This document shows positions 561-63,705 of a stretch of DNA of 64,000 nt, piece after piece. The translations under genes and the position numbers were made by a program. Positions within the stretch are counted from its first letter, which is position 1, and every line of letters starts with the position of its first letter. Under the pieces are notes generated by a model. It searched no databases. It saw only the letters and a list, made by a program, of their open reading frames with translations, and had not been told where the DNA came from. Origin of the DNA: Octopus bimaculoides (taxonomy: Eukaryota); the NCBI RefSeq assembly GCF_001194135.2, contig NC_068986.1, positions 76,369,602 to 76,433,601 on the forward strand, written 5' to 3'.

Positions 561-639
561 TTTTGTTTTTTTAATTGTTGCATTTGCCATTTCATGGTTT
601 AAAATATTTTAAAGTGAGTAGTCTTGTAGCTCTTCTATA

Positions 640-902
640 AAAACCTGCTGTTTTCCCCCCACACCCACTTCCTTCAGGTTTGTAGTCTTGCAGACTGCAT
701 GATGACTTCAATAGTGCTGCTGCCATGAAAAGAGCATTCAGTACATACTGTAAAGTGGTTGGTGTTAGAAAGGGCATCCAGCCCTAGAAACCATGCCAAA
801 GTAGTCACTGGAGTACAATGCAATCCTAGGACCTATCAGATCCTGTCAAGCTATCCAACCAATACCAGCATGGAACATGGACACTAAATCATGATGATGA
901 TA
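640..902 (+). mobile_element. SINE family A (GAT-tailed), partial copy
   Basis: Contains gtggttggtgttagaaagggcatccagc...ccaacc.ataccagcatggaa...(gat)n, shared with many copies in the window. Confidence 0.75.
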
Positions 903-1381: not shown

Positions 1382-1564
1382 GACATAGCTCGAGATTGTC
1401 TTCGCATTCAAAGCCTTCAGATGTTTGGAGATTATTTGTGTGGTATTGAAACCCCAATGCTATCTTTTGATGTTGAAACTAAATGTTACTCTTCAACAGA
1501 ACCCAGTTTATTAATAGATGAAGCAGAACTTGAAATGAATATTGAACAATATGTTACATCTGAG
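1382..1564 (+). CDS. SMG6: SMG6 internal coding exon (end of helical region and linker), phase 0-0
   Basis: ttttcttcag|GAC...GAG|gtgagt. Encodes DIARDCLRIQSLQMFGDYLCGIETPMLSFD..., matching my recollection of human SMG6 (IAADCKRV...LCGQEEPLLAF). 183 nt, in frame with the next exon. Confidence 0.9.
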
Positions 1565-2374: not shown

Positions 2375-2703
2375 GGGGTAGCCTAGTATCTCCTCTATTC
2401 TAAGACACTTATCCCTATCCCTCTATTATACTTTAATTTCTCATCTGGCACAAAGTCACCTCCCTCAGTACCACTGCCTCTCCCAGACAAGGGGTCTTTG
2501 TTTTGCAAGTTACTTGATGATCCTATTGGTGCTGGTGCCATGTAAAAAGCACCCAGTGCACTCTGTAAAGTGGTTGGCATTATGAAGGGCATCCAGCCTT
2601 AGAAACCATGCCAAAGCAGACAACAGAGCCCAGTGCAGTTCGGCTCATTAGCACCTGTCAAACCATCCAACCCATGCCAGTGTGGAAAATGCATGATGAT
2701 GAT
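2375..2703 (+). mobile_element. SINE family A (GAT-tailed) copy with 5' extension
   Basis: gtaaaaagcacccagtgcactctgtaaagtggttggcatt.tgaagggcatccagc...ccaacccatgcc...(gat)n. The same 5' extension recurs near 34050-34335. Confidence 0.75.
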
Positions 2704-3177: not shown

Positions 3178-3306
3178 GATGAGGCTGTAATGGAAACAGA
3201 AGAGGATGATATTACTGATGGGGAAGAGATGAAGATGTTGAAAGCAAAGAAAGAAGAACTGAAAAAGAGAGTTGAAAAACAAAGCCGCCACCAACAGAAT
3301 ATCCAA
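3178..3306 (+). CDS. SMG6: SMG6 coding exon (acidic linker plus coiled coil), phase 0-0
   Basis: catctag|GAT...CAA|gtaagt. Encodes DEAVMETEEDDITDGEEMKMLKAKKEELKKRVEKQSRHQQNIQ, equivalent to the human acidic linker and ...LRAKK...QEKIQ. 129 nt. Confidence 0.9.
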
Positions 3307-3518
3307 GTAAGTATATAAAGTGTAATTTTTCTCTTCCTCTTTTCTCCAGTGTCTTCTTGTCTTGCATGATTGACTTGGTCAGGTTGGTTAACTGTTGTAG
3401 TTGTTGCTGTAGGTGTTGTTGTTATTGTTGTTGTAGCTGTTGTATTTAGATTTCTTCTGTTGCCAAACTATATATCATTTTATCACTATTGCTCCCCTTT
3501 ATTTTCTTTGTGTGTGTC

Positions 3519-5589: not shown

Positions 5590-6163
5590 TTATTGCGGCA
5601 AGCGAAAGCGAAATCGGGATAGCACCTGTGCCCAGCGTCGCCTTTCTGGCACTTGTGCCCGTGACATGTGTAAGGATTTTCGAGCGAGATCGTTGCCAGT
5701 GCCCCTGGACTGGCTCTTTTGCGGTTGGCACATAAAATACACCATTTTGAGCGTGGCTGTTGCCAGTACCGCCTGACTGACCTTCATGCAGGTGACACGT
5801 AAAAGCACCCACTACACTCTCTGAGTGGTTGGCATTAGGAAGGGCATCCAGCTGTAGAAACTCTGCCAAATCAGATNNNNNNNNNNCCTGGATTGGCTCT
5901 TGTGCGGGTGGCACATAAAATACACCATTTTGAGCGTGGCTGTTGCCAGTACCGCCTGACTGACCTTCATGCAGGTGACACGTAAAAGCACCCACTACAC
6001 TCTCTGAGTGGTTGGCATTAGGAAGGGCATCCAGCTGTAGAAACTCTGCCAAATCAGATTGAGCCTGGTGTTGCCATCCGGTTTCACCAGTCCTCAGTCA
6101 AATCGTCCAACCCATGCTAGCATGGAAAGCGGACGTTAAATGATGATGATGATGATGATGATT
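5590..6163 (+). mobile_element. SINE family A (GAT-tailed), young copy with internal tandem units
   Basis: CpG-rich copy ending catggaaagcggacgttaaatgatgatgat. It spans a 10-N gap with a duplicated ~170-bp segment on either side. Confidence 0.85.
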
Positions 6164-6908: not shown

Positions 6909-7690
6909 ATGCAATGTAAATAAGCATTACATTTGGTCGAGTAATCTGTAATAGAAAGTTGTCGATAGATTTTGAGTATCTTTCACTGGACTATAGCTGT
7001 GGCCTAATTGTTGCAAAAGCAGAATTCATGCATAGTTGTAATTTTGTTGGTTAAAGTGATATTTATCAGAGGATTTGTTAATGGTAACATGCCTATTCTG
7101 TTCTGATATTATTATATTCAAATACATGTACAGAAAAGAAAGATAGTTTAGATTCCTGTTTTCAGTTGTGGTTTTAGAATTGTTTTGGGTAACCAGCCAG
7201 TTCTTAAAGATTTATTTTAAGATTTTCTACTGCGTTATTATTTATTTTTATGTTTTTAGCTGTATCTTTGATCATATTTCTGCTGTAGAGACAAGAGTTG
7301 TCTGCTTTTAGATTCTGATTGTGTTGCTCTGCAACTAAATATTTTCTTCAGTAACCTGATGAGATAGCACAGTCTTCATTAAAGAGAAAAGTTACTTCAG
7401 ATAGCATCAGACTGAAATAGCTACTCCACAATAAAACAATGACTAAATGTGACAAAAACAATTGTGATCCTATTTTTGACATGGTGTACTTAATCATTAG
7501 CATGTTGCAAACAAATGTATGAATTGATCTGTTTTGCACTTGAAGTAAATCAATGGACTACTTGTAAATAAATATCTGTTGTTTGTAAAACCTTAAACTG
7601 CATGTTGTTTGCTTGCATGCTTCTTTTTTTTTATGTAATTTTTGTCTTATCTGCACACTTATCACATCTGCTCCATCGTCATTTCCAAAG

Positions 7691-7762
7691 ATGTTGAGAG
7701 CCAAGAGAGATGCGCTCCAGCAGCAAGTTGATCAACAGGCCAGCCGTAAGCAGAACATCCAA
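7691..7762 (+). CDS. SMG6: Candidate duplicated alternative SMG6 exon, paralogous to 3235-3306, phase 0-0
   Basis: atttccaaag|ATG...CAA|gtcagt. MLRAKRDALQQQVDQQASRKQNIQ aligns without gaps to MLKAKKEELKKRVEKQSRHQQNIQ (11/24 identical). No AG occurs in 7546-7688 upstream. Confidence 0.7.
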
Positions 7763-9240
7763 GTCAGTAACAATTTTGTTTCCTTATTCAGATTGAATGT
7801 CTGCTAACCCACTTTCCTAAGTTGTTTTTTGTGTGAGCTTTGTTTCTATTCTGATGTCTTCAATGTTATTTGAGCTAAATAACTAATATTGTTTTTTTAA
7901 TAACAGACGTTTTCCTTGTAATTTTTTTTCTAATGAACTTTACTTAATCACCATCTTCACCATCACTCTACCATCTTTCAGTTTGGTAAGTGTTTGTCAG
8001 AAAGTTGATATATAATACTTATTTGTGTATTGTATGTTTACAGCTTATTTCATCTAACAACAAAAGATTAAATCTTTTAAATAAAATTTCAAAGTCTATT
8101 TCATTGAAACTGTTCTGACATACCTTACATTTGTACATTTTCCCCATTCTTTAATATGCTTCCTTTCCAAAGTAGCTATATTGCTAACCATTACCAATGT
8201 TGTACACTAGCTACTAGAGCATATTGTATTGGACTTTTTTTTTTTTAAATAGTCATGTAAAAAATAGAAGTAAACAAACTAAATTAACTGTAGCATCCAA
8301 GCAACACACTTAAAACTAACCTGGCTTTTTTACCTTACTAAATATATCCTGTGATATTGAATATCAGTTCTTATTTTCTTAATAACTTTTGTCATCAGAT
8401 TTCATGACTGTTAATGGTTCTTGTTATTTTACTTCTTTATTTTTTATTAATTATTCAACATGATGTAACAGTTGTAGGTGTTGCAGCTGTTGTTTAAAAG
8501 CAAAAAGTAAGCACTAACATTTTGCTCAGTTACTAATGTATGTAGTAAAATATGAAACGTTTATGATAAACACACCCATTCTTTGGACGGTTTAAGTTGC
8601 TTTGGTGGTATTTTTTTCACCAAATAATTGAACTACCAAGAAGGTTTATGAGTAGCACAATAATCTGTTTCTCATTAACCTAGGAACAGAAAATGAAATC
8701 GAAGGGAGTTATTGTGGAAGTTGTTGCACTTTAATGATCATAGTACATATAAGTTTGCAGGCTATGCAAAGTAGAGCTACTGAAGTGTTTTGTGAGTAGA
8801 AAGCAAAATTTCCTGTCAGAAACAGCCACATAAATGGTGTAAGGAATCTGAAGGAAGCCCCTTTATTTTGTCTTTCCACATAGTTAAATTGGTATGGAGC
8901 TGTATGAAAGATACGTATAACTTTCGCTAGTGGAAGCAAAACTCTTATCTAAAGGTTGATTCTTTGGGATGAATCATATGTGATTGTTGGAAAAGGGCTA
9001 GAACGACAATGTTAAAATGTATTTGAAACAATGGACAACAGTTGAAATATCATAATGGATGGGTAAATAAGCATCCTTAAAGTGAAACAATGGTATCAAA
9101 GGTAAACAAAGGTATCAACAAATAGAAGAGAGGAAAGGGAACATCTCCTTTCAAGTAACTCAGAATAGGTAAAAGTAAGCTTGCCACAGTTTAATGCAGT
9201 TTAAATATGTAGATTAAGATAGTTTGGTATTCGATATTCA

Positions 9241-9780
9241 TCGTGTACAGCGTCCTAGTCAACTGAATCACCATCGTAGGTGGACAGCGAAAATAAATAG
9301 GCAAAATCCTTTCACTTTTATAAAAAGATTAAAGAAGTATGGAAGACCCTACATACAAAAAAAACTATGTCCATTTACGTCCAATTACGGCAGGAGCTCT
9401 GGGCAAAATGTTATAGTGCATGACCATCGTTGGGACATAAGTAACATGTGTGTAAAGTTTGGTGAAAATCGGTTGAGAATTGTGGAAATGTAAGCTTTAG
9501 TCATTATACACACACATACTGTGATTTATATAGGTATACAGTGGAAATTAATAGACAAAATCCTTTCACTTTTATGAAAAGATTAAAAAAGTATGGAAAA
9601 CCCTACATACAAAAAACCTGTCCATTTACGCTGGAGTTCTGGGCAAAATGTTACAGTGCATGACCATCTGCAGGACATAAGTAATGTGTGCATAAAGTTT
9701 GGTGAAAATCGGTTGAGACTTGTGGAAATGTATGCGTTAATCATTATACACACACCTACTGCGATTTATATATACTAGAT
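9241..9780 (+). mobile_element. Non-autonomous Helitron-like element with a tandemly duplicated ~254-bp 3' unit
   Basis: Starts A|TC and ends ...tatatatactagat|t. Two units contain aagtttggtgaaaatcggttgag (caaaatcctttcac at 9302 and 9556). CpGs are retained. Confidence 0.55.
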
Positions 9781-14704: not shown

Positions 14705-15978
14705 TCAGGTCATCCCATAAGTTCTGTCCGATTTTACCTTTTTTAAAATTGAATGAAATTTAATAGTATTTTAGAATGTCTAATGGAATTAAAAATTATT
14801 TTTATGCATTTGTGTACATTTAAACTAATTAAATATTATTTTACAGAATAATAGAATTACAATTTCTTTGATTAAAACCCTTTCTAATATGGAAGTATCC
14901 AAAGAGCATTTAAGGCACAAAATGCTTTATGAGTACAAAAAAGGAAACTCTGCAGCCGAAGCGACTTGAAACATACATTCAGTTTATGGGTAAGAATGCT
15001 TGAATTAAAGAACTTGCAGAAGATGGTTTGCAAAATTCAGAAGTGGAGATTTTAGCCTTGAAGATGAAGATTGAACAGGACATCCATTTGAATTTGATGA
15101 TAAGCTGCTTGAGGCATTACTTGAAGAAAATCCTGCATTATCAGTTAAAGAATNNNNNNNNNNNNNNNNNNNNNNNNNNNNNNNNNNNNNNNNNNNNNNN
15201 NNNNNNNNNNNNNNNNNNNNNNNNNNNNNNNNNNNNNNNNNNNNNNNNNNNNNNNNNNNNNNNNNNNNNNNNNNNNNNNNNNNNNNNNNNNNNNNNNNNN
15301 NNNNNNNNNNNNNNNNNNNNNNNNNNNNNNNNNNNNNNATAGACTTGTGGCTGGTGACGAAAAATGGATCTTCTATTGAAATGTTAAATGTTGTAAGCAG
15401 TCGCTTGGTAAAAGGGAAAAAGCTCAACCACAACCGAGAAGGGAACTTCTATCTGGTGGGATTGCAAAGGAGTAATTCACTTTGAATTGTTACCACCTAA
15501 TGCAACAATCAATGCTCAAGTCTACTGTCAGCAATTAGAATGTTTGAACTAAGCTTAAGAAGAAAAAAACCCGCTTTAGTGAATCAAAAAGTAGTGATGT
15601 TTCATCAGGACAATGTGTGACCCCACACTGCAAAGATCACATCACAGAAGATCGGGGAGCTTGGATGGGAAAAAATTCCTCATCCACCTTATTCTCCCGA
15701 CCTTGCTCCTTCAGACTACCATTTGTTTTGTAGTTTACAGAATCATTTGGGGACATAACTTTTGCAAGCCAGGAGGAGGTCGAAACTGAAATTTCAGAGC
15801 TCTTCTGTTTGAAACCAAAGAGTTTTACATTGATGGGATTAACAAGCTTGTAAATAGATGGAAGGAAGTCATAGATAATCAGGGAAAGTACATTGATGAT
15901 TAAATTTCAATTAAATATAACATTTGATCACTTGTTTTCTTTATTCAAAATTCGGACAGAACTTATGGGATGACCTGA
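14705..15978 (+). mobile_element. mariner (DD34D) transposon, near full length, inactivated
   Basis: Perfect 27-bp TIRs tcaggtcatcccataagttctgtccga (14705-14731 and 15952-15978), flanked by CA (mutated TA) and TA. Transposase remnant 14889-15903 has HLRHKMLYEYKKGNSAAEA, GDEKWIFY, FHQDN and YSPDLAPSDYHLF, with in-frame stops, a deletion and an N-gap. Confidence 0.95.
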
Positions 15979-18899: not shown

Positions 18900-19050
18900 G
18901 CTCTCTTACGCAAACAGAGAAACTGTTGTATTGAGATTGAAATCCAGCCAGTATACCTTATACCAGATACCAACTGCTTCATTGATCATCTGCTTGGTTT
19001 ACAGAAACTAATTTTCAGTGAAAATTACACTATCTCTGTTCCACTAATTG
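18900..19050 (+). CDS. SMG6: SMG6 coding exon, start of PIN domain, phase 0-1
   Basis: tcatttcag|GCT...ATTG|gtgagt. Encodes ALLRKQRNCCIEIEIQPVYLIPDTNCFIDHLLGLQKLIFSENYTISVPLI, including the first catalytic Asp (PDTN). 151 nt. Confidence 0.95.
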
Positions 19051-19624: not shown

Positions 19625-20500
19625 GCACTGGCGTGGCTGTGGTAAAAAGTGTGCTTCCCAACCACATGGTTCTGGGTTCAGTACCAACTGCATGGCATGA
19701 CACCTTGGGCAAGCATCCTCTACTATAGCCATAGGTCAACTAAAGCTTTGTGAGTGGATTTGGTAGACAGAAAATGAAAGAAGTCCATTGTGTGTGAATG
19801 TTTCATTTATAAATTTTTATGCACCATGTGCTCTGTTTTTGGCGCAAAACAAAACCAGTTGCACACTCAGAGACTAACATGAACAGTCACGGATTTAAAC
19901 TGGTGGTCCACACTGACGAGGCTCAGAGTTAAATACCCAAAAGCCGAAACCTGGTTTGTGGATATCCCTAATTGCATAATATTTTTATTTGTGCTGTTAA
20001 ATGTTTTAATTCTTTCTGTTTCCCTCGCATACTGTTTTTCTCTGTTATATTGGTGCGCTACGGTGGATTAATTTAAGACTTAGCTCTTATTTCTAGCAGG
20101 TAGATGCTTATTAAGCATCATTACGCTTCGTGCAAATTTATAATTCATAGCTGTTTAAAGCTATTATANNNNNNNNNNNNNNNNNNNNNNNNNNNNNNNN
20201 NNNNNNNNNNNNNNNNNNNNNNNNNNNNNNNNNNNNNNNNNNNNNNNNNNNNNNNNNNNNNNNNNNNNNNNNNNNNNNNNNNNNNNNNNNNNNNNNNNNN
20301 NNNNNNNNNNNNNNNNNNNNNNNNNNNNNNNNNNNNNNNNNNNNNATATGTATATATACACACACAATGTGTGTGTATGTGTATCTATCTTGACAACCAG
20401 TGTTGGGTTGTTAATGTCCCCATAACTTAGCAGTTCAGCAAAAGTGACCAATAGAATAAGTACCAGTCTTTAAAAAAAAGTACTGGAGTCAATTTATTTG
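19625..20500 (+). mobile_element. SINE family C split at its central microsatellite by a hammerhead-bearing insert and an N-gap
   Basis: 5' half at ~19625-19795 (gcgtggctgtggtaaaaagtgtgcttcccaaccacatgg...) and 3' half at ~20350-20500 (cttgacaaccagtgttggg...gaataagtaccag). Confidence 0.65.
19907..19962 (+). ncRNA. Minimal type I hammerhead ribozyme with consensus core (Penelope-like origin likely)
   Basis: TCCACA CTGACGA GGCT [18 nt] AGCC GAAA C CTG GTT^ TGTGGA: 6-bp stem I, 4-bp stem II with the G10.1-C11.1 pair, CUGANGA and GAAA core, GUU cleavage triplet, minimal near-palindromic stem III. Confidence 0.8.
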
Positions 20501-22345: not shown

Positions 22346-22557
22346 TAATTAATGAGTTGGATGGCTTAGTCCGTGGTAACTTAGAAGGACATTATGAATC
22401 AATTGAACACAGTGACATGGTGAAGGAAAATGCAAGGTTGGCCATGACATTTCTTGAGCAGCAATTTGAACAGAAAAACCCCCATCTAAGAGCTCAAACA
22501 ACTAAAGGCACCATGCTTCAAACAATTCTCTATCGTAGTGAAGCTACTGACACTAAG
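22346..22557 (+). CDS. SMG6: SMG6 coding exon, PIN domain, phase 1-0
   Basis: tttcattgcag|TA ATT...AAG|gtaaat. Encodes (V)INELDGLVRG...ENARLAMTFLEQQFEQKNPHLRAQTTKGTMLQTILYRSEATDTK. 212 nt. Confidence 0.95.
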
Positions 22558-22699
22558 GTAAATTTCATTTTTGTATTTTGTAACTAGTTTCACTTATTGG
22601 ACTGTGGCCATGCTGGGGCACTACCTTCAAGGCTTTTTAGTTGATAGCATCAAACTCCACTACATATCTTATCATTCTATATTTTATTGAAGTAGTAAG

Positions 22700-23446: not shown

Positions 23447-23528
23447 GGAAACAATGATGACCTAATTCTTACCTGTTGCCTTCACTATTGCAAAGACACT
23501 ACTAAAGATTTCATTCCAAAAGGGAAAG
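23447..23528 (+). CDS. SMG6: SMG6 coding exon, PIN domain, phase 0-1
   Basis: ttttccttcag|GGA...AAAG|gtttga. Encodes GNNDDLILTCCLHYCKDTTKDFIPKGK, including the catalytic NNDD. 82 nt. Confidence 0.95.
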
Positions 23529-26274: not shown

Positions 26275-26405
26275 ATGAGCCTAACCGCATTTACCGTGAT
26301 GTAGTCCTTCTCACCGATGATCGTAATTTACGTCTGAAAGCCCACACTTACAATGTTCCTGTGAAGGATGTTCCCAGCTTCCTCAAGTGGTGTAAAGTAA
26401 CATGA
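26275..26405 (+). CDS. SMG6: SMG6 last coding exon, phase 1 to stop
   Basis: ttttgttattcag|AT GAG...TGA. Encodes (D)EPNRIYRDVVLLTDDRNLRLKAHTYNVPVKDVPSFLKWCKVT*, matching the human C-terminus (EVVLLTDDRNLRVKALTRNVPVRDIPAFLTW). 131 nt. Confidence 0.95.
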
Positions 26406-29400
26406 AATGTTCCTCTTCTGAAATCATTTCCTTGTTACCCTGTTTATCGAAGTGACGAGGTTCCTAATGCTTCAAGCTGAGCTGTGGTCCAAGCCAAACC
26501 CATGACAAAATGAGGAGACATAGAATAAAGACGAGGAGGAGAGAGTCAGTGCCAACAAACCCGTCACCCACTGGTTGTTGTATAAGCTCTATGACCAGAC
26601 ACTGACCACTACCAATGTCGGCTTCTATGCGAAGGCAGCTGAAAATGCCATACAAACGGTTTCTCCATCAAAGAACTGCATATTGGCCATTTAAGTTGAC
26701 CATCTATTAATGAGATATTGTTAATTACAACAACTCATTTTCACTCTAAATCTAATTTGGTAAAATAGGTGCATTGATGAGGGAATTTATTATTTTTTGT
26801 TTTTTTTTTATAATTATTTATTCATCTATTTTAAGAAATTTTACTTTTTTTTTTTTTCAGTTTTCCCCCCAAAATCTTCATTCATTATCATTGTGAAGGA
26901 ATTGCAGTTTCTCATTTTTATTTATTTTTAGAATAATTATTTCATTATTGCTTTCTAATTGTCATACAAAAAAAGATCTATAATGCATTGATGTATTTGT
27001 GAGACTTTGGTTTATTTTAATTACTAGCATAAAGTAATTTATTAGGCTTCCTATTTAAGCCAATTTGGCAACTGTGGCAGTTTATGTCATTGTCAAGAAT
27101 GTACTCCGTAGACATATGGACCTATTGACACACCCTGGTTGTTAAGTTGCTGTGTGTTACAGTTTGTCACTTAATGGAATGACTTACCAGGCAGCATAAT
27201 GAACCTCTGCATGTCCATGACCTGTTGACTTATGCCTTTGCACCAGTGGCTGTATTTGATGTATGCCTTGTCATCAAGTCATTTTATAAAACTATTGAAG
27301 GAATTTAAACCAAATGTCCTGCCCTAGAGAAAACAATCCCTAAGTATTATTAATCAAATAACAGATCTCTAAATTACTTATGCACCAGATATACTATGAC
27401 CAGTCTTGGCATTGGATTTGTCTTTTACACGTCAAAATCATAACAGAATGATCTGACAATATTAAGATTAATCTTTAAACAGTGAGTAATTATGAAATTC
27501 CTGTTAACCAATTAAGTAATATTTTACCAATGACAGGCTGATGAAATCTCAGGTATTCTCTTACCATTCTTTTAGTATTTCATATGAAATACTTCTGTTA
27601 ACAGCAAAAATGGTCAGGCGGCTTGACTTACAATCAGCTGTTCTCAGATGCAATCACACTTTTAAATCGTCTTCAATCACTTGTTCTAAATTTTATTTCT
27701 GATCTTCTGTGAATCATAATTTTGGATTTTAGTAGCATCTTTATTGCTCTACATCCAAAATCTAATACATCTGGTTGCATTAAACCAAATATTGATTTAT
27801 GGTAAATTCCAGTATTGCATTATAATGATAATAAAAACACAGTGGCTGTAGGGCTACAGTGCTAGACTACCAGTCACCAGTTCAACAGATCAAATCCTGA
27901 TACAGCTGTTATATTATCCTTTGTCACTAAACTAAAAAAACACGACACATGCTACTCCTATTTATGGTTGAAATTTAAGATTAGAAATGTCATTGAATTG
28001 TTTAAAAAGAAATTGAACAAAGTCATCCAATATTGCTAGCTGCATGGAAAGGACAGAAAAACGAATCCTTTAAAAAATTGTAAAATTCACTTTATAATCA
28101 TAATTTTAATTAATGGCACACCTCCACATAAATAATTGGAGGTGTACACTGAATTGTTTCTTCATTTCTCTTCCTAAACCACTCTTTCTTGAATGTTTAG
28201 CATTTTTTTATCTCTCACTGTTATAATATCCTGACACCCTCCATTGAAAACAAATAGTGACATCAATGATATTCTGTTTTTAACCTTAAATATAAATCCT
28301 TTTTGAAACAAAGAAGAATTGGTTCTTTAGAACTGTGAGATTCTTTTTTTTTTTTAATTTCTCTTGTTAAACTCTTGGCAAATATAAAGAATCAAAAACA
28401 AAAGCATTATATATATAATATATATTTCTCACCTGTCTACCCATGCCTACCTGGACAATGATAAGAACTATGAAATACTTTCAAAAATGTTTTCATTTTA
28501 ATATGTACAGGAATGCTTGATAAAGAATATTTCTCAGCGATATGATTTAGAAATATTACCAAAGTTATGTAATAGTATTGCTGAGAAAAAAATCAAACCA
28601 ATGCTTATTCAAGCTATCCTCTGAATGGACCCATTCTAATCCACTTTGGCTGCCACTGGTTCTCTTTGGGGTTTTTTGTAGTCTTTAGCCCAAATATTTT
28701 AACATTGTTAGCACTTGTAACAGGGTGAATGAAATCAAGAAAATAAATTAACTGTAAGATGTTGGTTATTAAGTGCAGTCTATCCAGTTACACAATTTGA
28801 ACGTACGTTAATTCCGTTTGAAAGTATTCAATAATGAATGCACTGCATTCTCTTGTTTTTGTCATGTAGGTTCTTTATGTTTGCCAAACCTTCTTTTTTT
28901 ACAACTGCCATTATGAGCTTCTGTTGTTTCAGTTTTATAAAATGTTAAAGTTTAATGGATTATTAAAAGAAAATATTATAATAAGAACATGTGTAAACAA
29001 AACAGAGAAAATAGGGCGAGAAGATGTTGAAGCTGAAGTAAATTATATTAGTATAATTAAAATGATCTCATCTACATGACATAGATATGTAAGTTTATGT
29101 AACTTAATAAATGGTGCAGTGGCAGTAGGTTGATAGTAAAGGGAAATTGGTTTAATTTCCATGTTGCCCATAGTATTTCTTATTCAATCATGTTTGTTTA
29201 CACATGTTCACGTTTAATATTTACAAATAAAAATCATTGAAAAATCTTGGCTCATTTACATATGCATTTTGAGGATAAAAATATTTTAATATGACACTGT
29301 TGAAAATTAAAATATCTAATTTTAGATTATAATTTTGAAAAGAGAAAAAAATCCTTTTAATAAAAAGAACAAAACATTTTTCTACAATTGGTGTGCCTGC

Positions 29401-29514: not shown

Positions 29515-32500
29515 AAATATTAGTTTATGGATCTTTATATATTCAAACACTGTTGCTGTAATTTGTCCAATTCCGATCTAATCTCAGGCTTTCCTATTTC
29601 TTTTATTTTCTTCTGTGTTCTTTTTGAGTTATCTGAAAATTGATAGACTTTAAAGCAAGGGAGGGGTGGGGATCAAAGAGAAATGTTTATTATCATTTAA
29701 ATGGGTTTGCTTATTTAAAACCTAAACAGCCAAAAGAAGACAGCAGACAAATACTATGTGACTCTGGTGTAGACCAGTTGCCACTCAACGCACACTAATA
29801 TGCTATACAGGGAACTACATGAAAAAGAAGAGATAGATCTATTTTCTAGTCTTATAATAATAATAATTTGTTTTTAAATAAATTTGTTAGGTTTGTCTTT
29901 AACAGAAATAGTTACATTTCAACACATCCAAAGAAGCTGTGTGAGATATAATCTTAACATATTGTTGATGGAATTTTTGTTGTTTTAAATTGATTTTCAT
30001 TGTCAGTGATAGCATGTTGCCTTCATTTTTTATTGGCAATCTTCTCTTTCCTTGCTATATCTCAGGCATATTGCCTAAGTATCATTATTATTTTTATTGT
30101 AATTATTATTGTTAGGGGTTAAAGTAAATGGATCCTCTGTGGTGTACTGGGCAGAAACAGAGCACCACACTAAATGGCTTACATTATTTATTCTAATTCT
30201 CTATCTTCAATTTCAAATCTTGCCAGGGTCTATTGTTACCTGTGATCCTTCTGGAATTAACAGAATAATTACCATTCAAATATTGGGTAGATTTCACTTT
30301 TCCTCCCTCCAAAATTGTGGCCTTCTGCTAAAGTTGAAATAATTATCTTATATGACAATAGGCCCCTTACTCCCGATTCTTTTGTTCATTAATGCTACAG
30401 GCATTGTAATGTGTCCTTGATATAGAAACTTCTCTCCTATCCTTTATCATAGGTTAAAAAAAAAACAAAAAAACTTTGAAATCAAGAATTAATGTTTGTT
30501 CATCAATTTGTCTCAGATACTCAAATGTATTTTTGTTTCAGCTCTAAAATTCCATTCATGTTTAAGAAATCCTTAGTAACATTAAGCAGATGGCCATAGA
30601 TGCCCTATGCTATGTAATCTGGTGCTTCACTGTTCTGTATTCAAATTCCATGTGGATTTCATCTTGCATTTCACCCATCTGGAAATCAATAAAAACATTA
30701 ACCTCTATGAACTCTCCAGTTATAAGCAAGATCACTTGTTCTACGATATCAAACCTATTACCTCACCATTCTATGTAATGGTACGACTTTAACCAGAAGG
30801 AAGTACAATCAGTAAACACAGTATTATAACACAGCATATTCAGATAAGTAAATAACTTAGTACTAAACCATACTTTTCAATTTTCCTGCATCCTATTTTC
30901 ATCACTCTCTTTATACAGTTTGAATAAAAAGATGTTCATCCATTTTCATCAATATTAAGTTGTAAAAACTTCATAGTTGTGGATTGAGCTCTTGTTAATG
31001 GCTGTAGAAAATTCCAAGTCATTTATAGAAAATATATTTGGGTTTATTTAGTATGTGAGCAATTTTGAAAAATTACATCTTAGCCTTGTTAAATGGTGAA
31101 TATTATTTTGATTTAAAAATCCCTGTCTCTATCATCTGTTGATCAAAGTAATTAGTGTGTGCATTCATTAAATTTTTCAACTGCTAGATTATTGAAAAAT
31201 GTTTTCAATTGAGTCTGAGTTAATTGTTTCTAGATAACTTAGATAAATTTTATGTTTAAAATATTACTGTTTAGAACCTTTACTTAAAAAGATGCAACTT
31301 TTATGATTTTGAAAACTTTTTTTATATTTTTAATTAATACTGCTTTGTAATTGCTTCTTAAAGAAAGTTGATCAGTGACTTAGTGCCTAAAGTATAGTCA
31401 CAAATTCCTAGTTCTTTTTATCACTAACTTTTATGTACAGTTTGTGTGAGCCTCAAAAATGTCTACCTCTATGTGTATGTGAGAGAGAGAGAGAGAGAGA
31501 GAGAGAAACAGACAGAGTGTGTGTGTGTGTGTCTTACATTTTTTTTTTTTTCTAATCCCCAAAGTATCTCCAACTTGTGGCCTGCAGACAATATATGCGT
31601 GTGGAGGTATATTTATGCTGTCCTTAAAATATTTATAATTGCAATAACATTGACATGTTGTTGCCTACATTTATACTCTATTCGGAGTATGTCTGCGATG
31701 TTAAACTTGGGTACCTTAGATGCTTTCAAAAGTACTCAGCATTTATTATTATTATTCTTTATTCCATATTTTAAATGTCCATTGAATTTTTTTCTTCTTC
31801 CTCATTTCATCAGTTTACTTACTTGTAAAATTCACTCAGAATTTGCATTTTTTAAAAGTAAGTTTATTAAATTCTGTATTGCTGTATGTTTGGCTATAAC
31901 CCTCCTTTTAAACATTACCTAATTCTGAAAACACACACACACACACATATATATACAACCTGCTGTTGTAACAGAGTATTGATTCCAATAGGTTAAATAA
32001 TGCTGTGAAAATTGAAACTTCTTGAGATATTTAATTTATTTAGTTATTGCAGTCTCTCGGAGGTGAAAGAAGCTGTTTTATTATTGCTTTTTGGGCAGGG
32101 GGTAGGGCTTGTCTCATTTGTTGAAATAGAGGTTTGCAAATCAAGCCCCTAATTAAAAGGTGTAACAAAAGGTGTAATGCCAAAATGCCTTTTTATCTAT
32201 AACTGCCAAGTATTTTCTATTCAGAAGCTTGCTCGAATTAACTAGAGTTAATTTTTTATTCGCTTTCTATGAAAATTTGCTGTGCTATTGTATGTTGAAG
32301 CACTATCTTCTCTGACTCTTGCATACAGACACTTCAAGAATCCAATACTATGCCCCCCAGCCTTTAAATGTCATATAAGCCCATACTGTCCCTTCTGGTG
32401 AGTCTGTTGAACTGCCATTATCTCAAAGCACTAATTTACCAAACTGCCATGTTTTTATTTATTTAATATTTTGAGTTTTTTGGGGTCTTTTTTTTTCTTT

Positions 32501-58683: not shown

Positions 58684-58923
58684 NNNNNNNNNNNNNNNNN
58701 NNNNNNNNNNNNNNNNNNNNNNNNNNNNNNNNNNNNNNNNNNNNNNNNNNNNNNNNNNNNNNNNNNNNNNNNNNNNNNNNNNNNNNNNNNNNNNNNNNNN
58801 NNNNNNNNNNNNNNNNNNNNNNNNNNNNNNNNNNNNNNNNNNNNNNNNNNNNNNNNNNNNNNNNNNNNNNNNNNNNNNNNNNNNNNNNNNNNNNNNNNNN
58901 NNCTTACCACACAGCCACTCCTT
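58441..58923 (-). mobile_element. tRNA-derived SINE family C spanning an N-gap
   Basis: Tail (ttttactc)n at 58441 and head cttaccacacagccactcc after the gap. Confidence 0.85.
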
Positions 58924-63075: not shown

Positions 63076-63705
63076 ACACATAGATATATACATATATATA
63101 TATATATATNNNNNNNNNNNNNNNNNNNNNNNNNNNNNNNNNNNNNNNNNNNNNNNNNNNNNNNNNNNNNNNNNNNNNNNNNNNNNNNNNNNNNNNNNNN
63201 NNNNNNNNNNNNNNNNNNNNNNNNNNNNNNNNNNNNNNNNNNNNNNNNNNNNNNNNNNNNNNNNNNNNNNNNNNNNNNNNNNNNNNNNNNNNNNNNNNNN
63301 NNNNNNNNNNNNNNNNNNNNNNNNNNNNNNNNNNNNNNNNNNNNNNNNNNNNNNNNNNNNNNNNNNNNNNNNNNNNNNNNNNNNNNNNNNNNNNNNNNNN
63401 NNNNNNNNNNNNNNNNNNNNNNNNNNNNNNNNNNNNNNNNNNNNNNNNNNNNNNNNATATATATTACAGTTACGTTGAAACAAGTGATACAAGAAAGTGC
63501 AGCATTCACGACTAAACATTTGTGGAGTAAATGATGAGCTAATTTGACTAAGCAACATACCATGCGTCCATTTGGAGTATTCCAAGCCCTAACCTGTCAT
63601 GGAAAATTGGGGGTGGGTGGGGTATGTGGTTTTTGAATGCACCAAAAAGCTGTCAGTGGATATACTCTCCTTTGTGGCAGTCGGCACTGCATCTTACACG
63701 ACCCA

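Follow-up and report, generated by a model that had tools for sequence, protein, structure and literature searches.

SMG6 exons in the window

A 64,000-nt stretch of the Octopus bimaculoides genome (NCBI RefSeq assembly GCF_001194135.2, contig NC_068986.1, positions 76,369,602 to 76,433,601 of the forward strand; hereafter the window) was analysed to characterise a 72-nt segment that resembles part of a neighbouring exon of SMG6, alias EST1A, which encodes an endonuclease acting in nonsense-mediated mRNA decay (NMD). By its translated sequence the window is the 3' part of that gene. Its exons form an exact suffix of Octopus EST1A models with PF10374, PF10373 and PF13638, the top outgroup matches are SMG6/EST1A, and a PIN domain was found at the C-terminus, preceded by an EST1/14-3-3-like region. 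Exons A to F, the 72-nt exon between B and C and the elements around it are listed in Table 1; AG/GT boundaries were present at all SMG6 exons listed.

Table 1. SMG6 exons and associated elements in the window (window coordinates).
Feature	Position	Strand	Remark
SMG6 exon A (DIARDCL...YVTSE)	1382-1564	+	phase 0 at 3' end; exact match to Octopus SMG6 models
SMG6 exon B, parent exon	3178-3306	+	19-aa acidic linker and 24-aa basic helix
Part of exon B paralogous to the 72-nt exon	about 3232-3314	+	
AG-free zone before the acceptor of the 72-nt exon	7546-7688	+	143 nt
Conserved upstream intronic element	7584-7690	+	two TGCATG, pyrimidine tract, acceptor aAG at 7689-7690
72-nt exon, probable cassette	7691-7762	+	phase 0-0; encodes MLRAKRDALQQQVDQQASRKQNIQ
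Donor gtcagtaac and short conserved downstream stretch	7763-7789	+	gtcagta identical in three species
SMG6 exon C (ALLRKQRNCC...VPLI), PIN domain start	18900-19050	+	exact match to Octopus SMG6 models
SMG6 exon D, PIN domain	22346-22557	+	
SMG6 exon E, PIN domain	23447-23528	+	
SMG6 exon F, last coding exon	26275-26405	+	includes TGA stop

Paralogy with exon B

The last 24 codons of exon B encode MLKAKKEELKKRVEKQSRHQQNIQ. Aligned without gaps to the translation of the 72-nt exon (MLRAKRDALQQQVDQQASRKQNIQ), they share 11/24 amino acids and 49/72 nucleotides, and the BLOSUM62 score is 63. When all 24-mers from the six reading frames of the window were scored in the same way against the exon B tail, the next-best reached 26, and the tail against itself 118. 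The GC content of the 72-nt exon was 51%, versus about 30% in both flanks.

An earlier description made from the letters of the window (hereafter the sequence-only reading) had called the segment an ungapped 24-aa paralogue of the exon B tail with 11/24 identities, and translation and scoring confirmed this. Also found as described were four identical residues with differing synonymous codons (gca/gcc, ctg/ctc, caa/cag and aat/aac), phase 0 with AG/GT at both ends (aag/ATG and CAA/gtcagt), and the AG-free zone upstream, beyond which the closest AG lies at 7544-7545.

Paralogy extends from 3 nt before the 72-nt exon to about 8 nt after it, and the introns beyond are not paralogous. Because it begins at the aag before the ATG, the acceptor AG is the homologue of an internal lysine codon (AAG) of exon B. 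Both exons have the donor gt[a/c]agta and, since the paralogy runs through it, this site was duplicated along with the exon.

Orthologues and age of the duplication

A HMMER scan of cluster representatives returned two cephalopod proteins, from Sepia pharaonis and Argonauta hians. The Sepia SMG6 (CAE1322979.1) reads ...KMLRAKKEELKKKVEAKTLHQQNIQ-MLRAKREQLQKEVEQQTNRRQNIQ-AILQEHR..., with two helix copies in tandem, and at the Sepia genome locus these are separate exons (20089-20223 and 22570-22641), with the PIN exon next at 26469. The Argonauta model (GAB1608422.1) holds only the exon B copy; at the locus, an intact unannotated MLRAKRDELQQQVNRQASRKQNIQ, identical to the window copy at 21/24 residues, lies at 32096-32167, within the B-to-C intron. 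Reciprocal blastn gave cross-hits between the two copies in all three species.

The window, Argonauta and Sepia alike have a 72-nt exon of phase 0-0 with AG/GT boundaries, an AAG acceptor and a CAA/GTCAGTA donor; neighbouring acceptors in the three genomes are CAG or TAG (18/18), unlike this AAG. Nucleotide identity of the segment was 88% between the two octopods and 78% to Sepia, with the frame and both splice sites kept. The sequence-only reading had proposed a check in related species, where absence or frame disruption, together with a lack of junction reads, would speak against it; in Argonauta and Sepia the segment is present and its frame intact.

A second helix copy was not found in the SMG6 loci of the scallop Pecten maximus or the gastropod Babylonia areolata, and the tandem helix was absent from the 177 SMG6-like proteins retrieved up to that stage, Sepia excepted. 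Both cephalopod copies resemble the outgroup SMG6 helix (7-13 of 24 residues identical). Judged from these loci and proteins, the duplication is cephalopod-specific and arose in or before the coleoid ancestor, predating the octopod-decapodiform split, because copies occur in three cephalopods and in none of the outgroup loci or proteins. Published molecular clocks place the octopus-cuttlefish split at roughly 250-300 million years.

In Pecten (locus 27952-28065), the helix and the PIN start lie within one exon, with no intron where cephalopods hold the 72-nt exon. A metagenome DNA scan for ATGTTGAGRGCCAARAGRGA gave 14 matches, all of which were rejected as chance, their translations diverging after MLRAKR[DE].

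Selection on the 72-nt exon

The proportion of nonsynonymous differences (pN) in the 72-nt exon was 0.06-0.18, versus 0.42-0.73 for synonymous differences (pS; Fisher p = 0.0016 and 0.006). Between the window and Argonauta, pN was 0.06 and pS 0.42, with 0.02-0.11 and 0.44-0.75 in six neighbouring exons; between the window and Sepia, the values were 0.15 and 0.54, with 0.07-0.20 and 0.71-0.88 in five (neighbour ranges cover only exons that could be scored). In both comparisons, its pS was below that of every neighbouring exon. With orthologues present and pN below pS, the segment is almost certainly a real exon under selection. The claim of the sequence-only reading that an old exon duplication had been kept under selection is borne out by the intact orthologues in both species and a pN far below pS.

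A non-functional pseudo-exon, or a chance similarity within an intron, could be argued from the suboptimal splice sites, and a 24-codon open frame is weak evidence when taken alone. However, the gap between BLOSUM62 scores of 63 and 26 excludes chance, and the segment keeps its identity, frame and splice sites while introns round other exons do not align. Chance similarity and a decaying pseudo-exon were rejected on the score gap, flank conservation and pN/pS, and we give such an origin next to no probability.

Intronic conservation and signs of regulation

The 100 nt upstream of the 72-nt exon were conserved at z = 11.4 versus Argonauta and 9.4 versus Sepia. This exceeds the conservation of the flanks of six other exons (z = -0.3 to 3.1), which are not alignable even between the two octopods. 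Collinear blastn alignment reached 107 nt and 77 nt upstream, at this exon only. The zone free of AG is long in all three species (about 133 nt in Argonauta and about 117 nt in Sepia), the pyrimidine content of the tract before the acceptor is 70-74%, the acceptor AG is invariant, and the splice sites as a pair are weak but invariant across the three species.

TGCATG, the DNA form of the RBFOX-type motif (U)GCAUG, was found conserved near the exon. It occurs in the window at 7599-7604 and 7614-7619 (-92 and -77 from the exon), in Argonauta at -187, -126 and -107, and in Sepia at -56. The count within 190 nt upstream is thus 2, 3 and 1, at a locus density of 0.25-0.5 per kb, and the motif is present in 3/3 upstream flanks of this exon versus 6/36 flanks of other exons. 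Exon B likewise has a TGCATG in the 200 nt downstream of it, in the window (about 3362-3367) and in Sepia but not in Argonauta.

Textbooks characterise conserved, regulated alternative exons by this combination of weak splice sites, conserved flanking intron, low synonymous divergence and (U)GCAUG. Inclusion of the 72-nt exon is probably regulated, and we infer that an RBFOX-like factor may control it through the upstream UGCAUG. Exon B looks constitutive because its splice sites are strong (TAG acceptor, GTAAGT donor), both flanking introns are unconserved and its pS is normal; it has none of these regulatory hallmarks.

RNAalifold paired TTTGCTTGC in the upstream intron (7608-7616, overlapping the second TGCATG) with GTAAGCAGA in the exon (7746-7754), a stretch of 9 bp with one compensatory change in Sepia; three sequences are too small a set to judge this pairing by, and the overall fold was not significant. 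The Lys codon AAG within 7746-7754 is AGG (Arg) in Sepia.

The upstream sequence also bears on the suggestion of the sequence-only reading that the ATG at 7691 opens an alternative first coding exon, from which an intronic promoter would give a helix-plus-PIN protein of roughly 215 aa. Three species share the ATG and its A at -3, and the predicted length is correct ((72+151+212+82+131-3)/3 = 215 aa); vertebrate annotations moreover hold short C-terminal SMG6 isoforms of 377-440 aa, which start from other upstream exons. However, exon B has the same Met (KMLKAK or KMLRAK) and passed it on to the copy, so that its conservation is not specific to a start codon. The invariant upstream AG and the pyrimidine tract are as expected of a 3' splice site, conservation ends 77-107 nt upstream with nothing promoter-like beyond, and 0/9 gene models (Table 2) begin at 7691. 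The PIN-only start is therefore unsupported, and we regard it as highly improbable.

Use of the exon in gene models

Octopus SMG6 models were retrieved with the full-length Argonauta protein as query, and the cluster members were then read (Table 2). Word-index protein searches with the C-terminal region (276 aa) and with exon B, the copy and exon C found nothing from cephalopods, and hence no fragment of a transcript; no match to the 276-aa query was longer than 482 aa.

Table 2. Cephalopod SMG6 gene models and their use of the 72-nt exon.
Model	Length	72-nt exon
O. sinensis X1, XP_036360055.1	1548 aa	included after exon B
O. sinensis X2, XP_036360056.1	1524 aa	skipped
O. sinensis X3, XP_029637408.2	1523 aa	included after exon B
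O. bimaculoides XP_014773450.1	1520 aa	included after exon B
O. bimaculoides A0A0L8HCQ7	1578 aa	included after exon B
O. bimaculoides XP_052824838.1 (current)	1520 aa	skipped
O. vulgaris CAI9723978.1	1499 aa	skipped
A. hians GAB1608422.1	1521 aa	skipped
S. pharaonis CAE1322979.1	564 aa	included after exon B

Inclusion was seen in five of the nine models, each time after exon B, and skipping in four. The C-termini of XP_014773450.1 and A0A0L8HCQ7 are the exact window translation of exons A and B, 7691-7762 and exons C to F, and that of XP_052824838.1 is the exact translation of A, B and C to F. Both forms were thus found in O. bimaculoides (XP_014773450.1 versus XP_052824838.1) and in O. sinensis (X1 and X3 versus X2), where X1 and X2 differ solely by 24 residues, MLRAKRDELQQQVDQQASRKQNIQ, inserted after ...HQQNIQ. 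The exon length is divisible by 3 and both isoforms are in frame. As a rule, NCBI Gnomon adds further isoforms only if transcript alignments back them.

The sequence-only reading had presented the exon as hidden and as a kind of duplication not known in SMG6. It was not hidden, being present in RefSeq/UniProt models of O. bimaculoides, O. sinensis and S. pharaonis; because the exon and its optional use already stand in models of three species, it is not new as an exon. The second part is incomplete for the same reason; literature searches on SMG6 with mutually exclusive exons, cephalopods or exon duplication found nothing relevant, and no paper was found that describes the exon or its origin by duplication.

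Another alternative block, about 25 aa long, was observed in the mid-region of SMG6 (...DSCYQ[KSSSRYPSAGPPKLRKYQFETMPREY/N]GQGL...), coded outside the window. It separates X1 and X2 from X3, and XP_052824838.1 from XP_014773450.1, and varies independently of the 24-aa block. A0A0L8HCQ7 further holds an insert (FYNWMPFLTPATPRVLWVLF...) that matches an interspersed repeat of the GWMPFL type (see below); because of this match, the model probably contains an exonised copy of the repeat.

The same models bear on the proposal, also made in the sequence-only reading, that the 72-nt exon and exon B are mutually exclusive, so that choice of the copy would remove the acidic linker. The two exons are homologous, adjacent and of the same phase, the AG-free zone is long, and some screens for such exons tolerate a length difference of 19 aa. 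However, 0/9 models join exon A to the copy, and the five that include it carry B and the copy together. Nor was an enforcing mechanism found when frame, intron length, site type and RNA pairing were examined. With both exons included the frame is retained (72 nt), the intron from B to the copy is not too short (4384 nt, with 1510 nt in Argonauta and 2346 nt in Sepia), and GT-AG at all sites leaves no U2/U12 incompatibility. Between exons A and D there was no further conserved intronic island to serve as a docking site. The local RNA fold was no more stable than that of shuffled sequences (z = +0.69), and a consensus fold had little support. With exon B itself apparently constitutive, mutual exclusion was judged very unlikely.

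The exon could instead be constitutive and always follow exon B, the skipping models being annotation errors. Inclusion in five models agrees with this; short exons with weak splice sites are of the type that predictors miss, and A. hians and O. vulgaris have one model each. Against it, the O. sinensis RefSeq annotation lists both forms, differing by exactly 24 aa, and the conserved upstream intron, lowered pS, TGCATG and long AG-free zone are found at none of the six neighbouring exons. On balance, we consider constitutive use unlikely.

Interpretation and predicted protein consequence

The segment is best explained, with good though not full confidence, as a coleoid-wide, selectively maintained, frame-preserving cassette exon that derives from a partial tandem exon duplication and is spliced between exons B and C. 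In the proposed course of events, a tandem duplication would have copied exon B's last 72 nt along with the donor site, and the new acceptor AG would have been recruited from the coding AAG (lysine) of exon B. On inclusion, the cassette would be spliced between B and C, so that the protein carries two consecutive 24-residue helix copies; on skipping, exon B would be joined directly to exon C.

Several points weigh against this reading. Inclusion and skipping are known at the level of gene models only, and skipping within one annotation was seen only in O. sinensis. In the Argonauta, O. vulgaris and current O. bimaculoides models, a short exon with weak sites could simply have been missed by prediction. 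The lowered synonymous divergence comes from only 13 synonymous sites, and the link to RBFOX from one 6-mer motif.

The isoform with exon B and the copy was modelled with AlphaFold2, using an alignment of 35 SMG6 homologues. The mean predicted local distance difference test score (pLDDT) was 78. A disordered acidic linker was predicted at residues 41-74, followed by one unbroken helix at residues 76-136 (from the exon B tail through the copy into the start of exon C; pLDDT block means about 58-90, mostly 79-90) and then the PIN fold. Because this helix is predicted to be continuous across both copies, inclusion would lengthen the single long alpha-helix before the PIN endonuclease domain by 24 residues. 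Such a change may affect SMG6 activity or the geometry between the UPF1-binding part and the nuclease.

Rather more doubtful is a coleoid-specific, tissue-regulated switch (for example in nerve or muscle, with an RBFOX homologue acting at the upstream UGCAUG) that would add the 24 residues to the helix. If it existed, the rigid helix that links the PIN domain to the UPF1-binding 14-3-3-like domain would be longer by roughly 3.5 nm, and the site or efficiency of NMD-target cleavage could change in those tissues. A minor isoform that joins exon A to the copy, without the acidic linker, may also exist.

Comparison with known systems

Exons that arose by tandem duplication and are used alternatively form a class reportedly surveyed by Letunic, Copley and Bork in 2002 and by Kondrashov and Koonin in 2001. 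Like these, the SMG6 exon is a same-strand, same-phase paralogue in an adjacent intron, with purifying selection and alternative use. Unlike the typical case, it copies only the 3' 72 nt of a 129-nt parent and takes its acceptor from an internal AAG codon, and in the available models it is added after the parent, not substituted for it. It is otherwise an ordinary alternative exon, genuine and a member of a well-known class.

Dscam clusters consist of mutually exclusive exons. Exons 5a/5b of SCN alpha-subunits are another mutually exclusive pair (PMC12772994). The SMG6 pair resembles both systems in being duplicated homologous exons with conserved flanking intron sequence, but differs in that its copies are co-included, in frame, in five models and that no enforcing mechanism was found.

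With RBFOX-type cassette exons, the SMG6 exon shares a length that is a multiple of 3, weak splice sites, reduced synonymous divergence, about 80-110 nt of conserved upstream intron and TGCATG 55-190 nt upstream in three species, a likeness of motif and conservation at the sequence level. Flank conservation of conserved alternative exons is said to have been described by Sorek and Ast in 2003.

The acidic linker, the basic helix (ELRAKK...KIQ-like) and the PIN domain are common to this gene and to SMG6/EST1A of human, bivalves and gastropods. Unlike outgroup SMG6, which has a single helix copy in the proteins and in the Pecten and Babylonia loci, cephalopods hold two.

The main bearing of the finding is on annotation: a real coleoid-conserved exon, which older or sister-species models include, is left out of the current RefSeq model of O. 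bimaculoides and of the models of A. hians and O. vulgaris. The exon also offers a datable example of a new cassette exon from partial tandem duplication, kept since before the octopus-cuttlefish split. It falls in the linker helix that adjoins the catalytic domain of the NMD endonuclease and, if its inclusion is tissue-specific, would give a route to study linker length in SMG6 function.

Other features of the window

The window has a GC content of 34.6% and contains 1169 N in several assembly gaps (e.g. about 1597-1830, 15150-15340, 20165-20340, 58685-58900 and 63110-63450), none of which touches the SMG6 exons discussed. A mariner-type transposase remnant (PF01359 Transposase_1, E = 9e-14) lies at 15412-15549 (+), beside the gap at about 15150-15340, within the intron that separates exon C from the cassette exon. 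Tests of five further open reading frames (ORFs), intronic or downstream, gave no Pfam match.

Two similar neighbouring ORF fragments at 9218-9490 and 9466-9775 (+), with ...INRQNPFTF[IM]KRLKKYG[RK]PYIQK..., point to a local tandem duplication of a repeat; fragment 9218-9490, the one that was scanned, had no Pfam match. The GWMPFL-type short interspersed repeat (translation ...GWMPFLxPTTxxxV...) was found in the window at 595-783(-), 2398-2598(-), 2560-2717, 5798-5875 and 5981-6162, and about 10 or more copies on both strands were present in the Argonauta SMG6 locus.

A Logan-derived ORF of 172 aa was 100% identical to exon F (window 26275-26480) and reads the SMG6 TGA and a second TGA as Trp. 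This read-through ORF is a gene-caller artefact, a code 4-like translation of an AT-rich eukaryotic contig.

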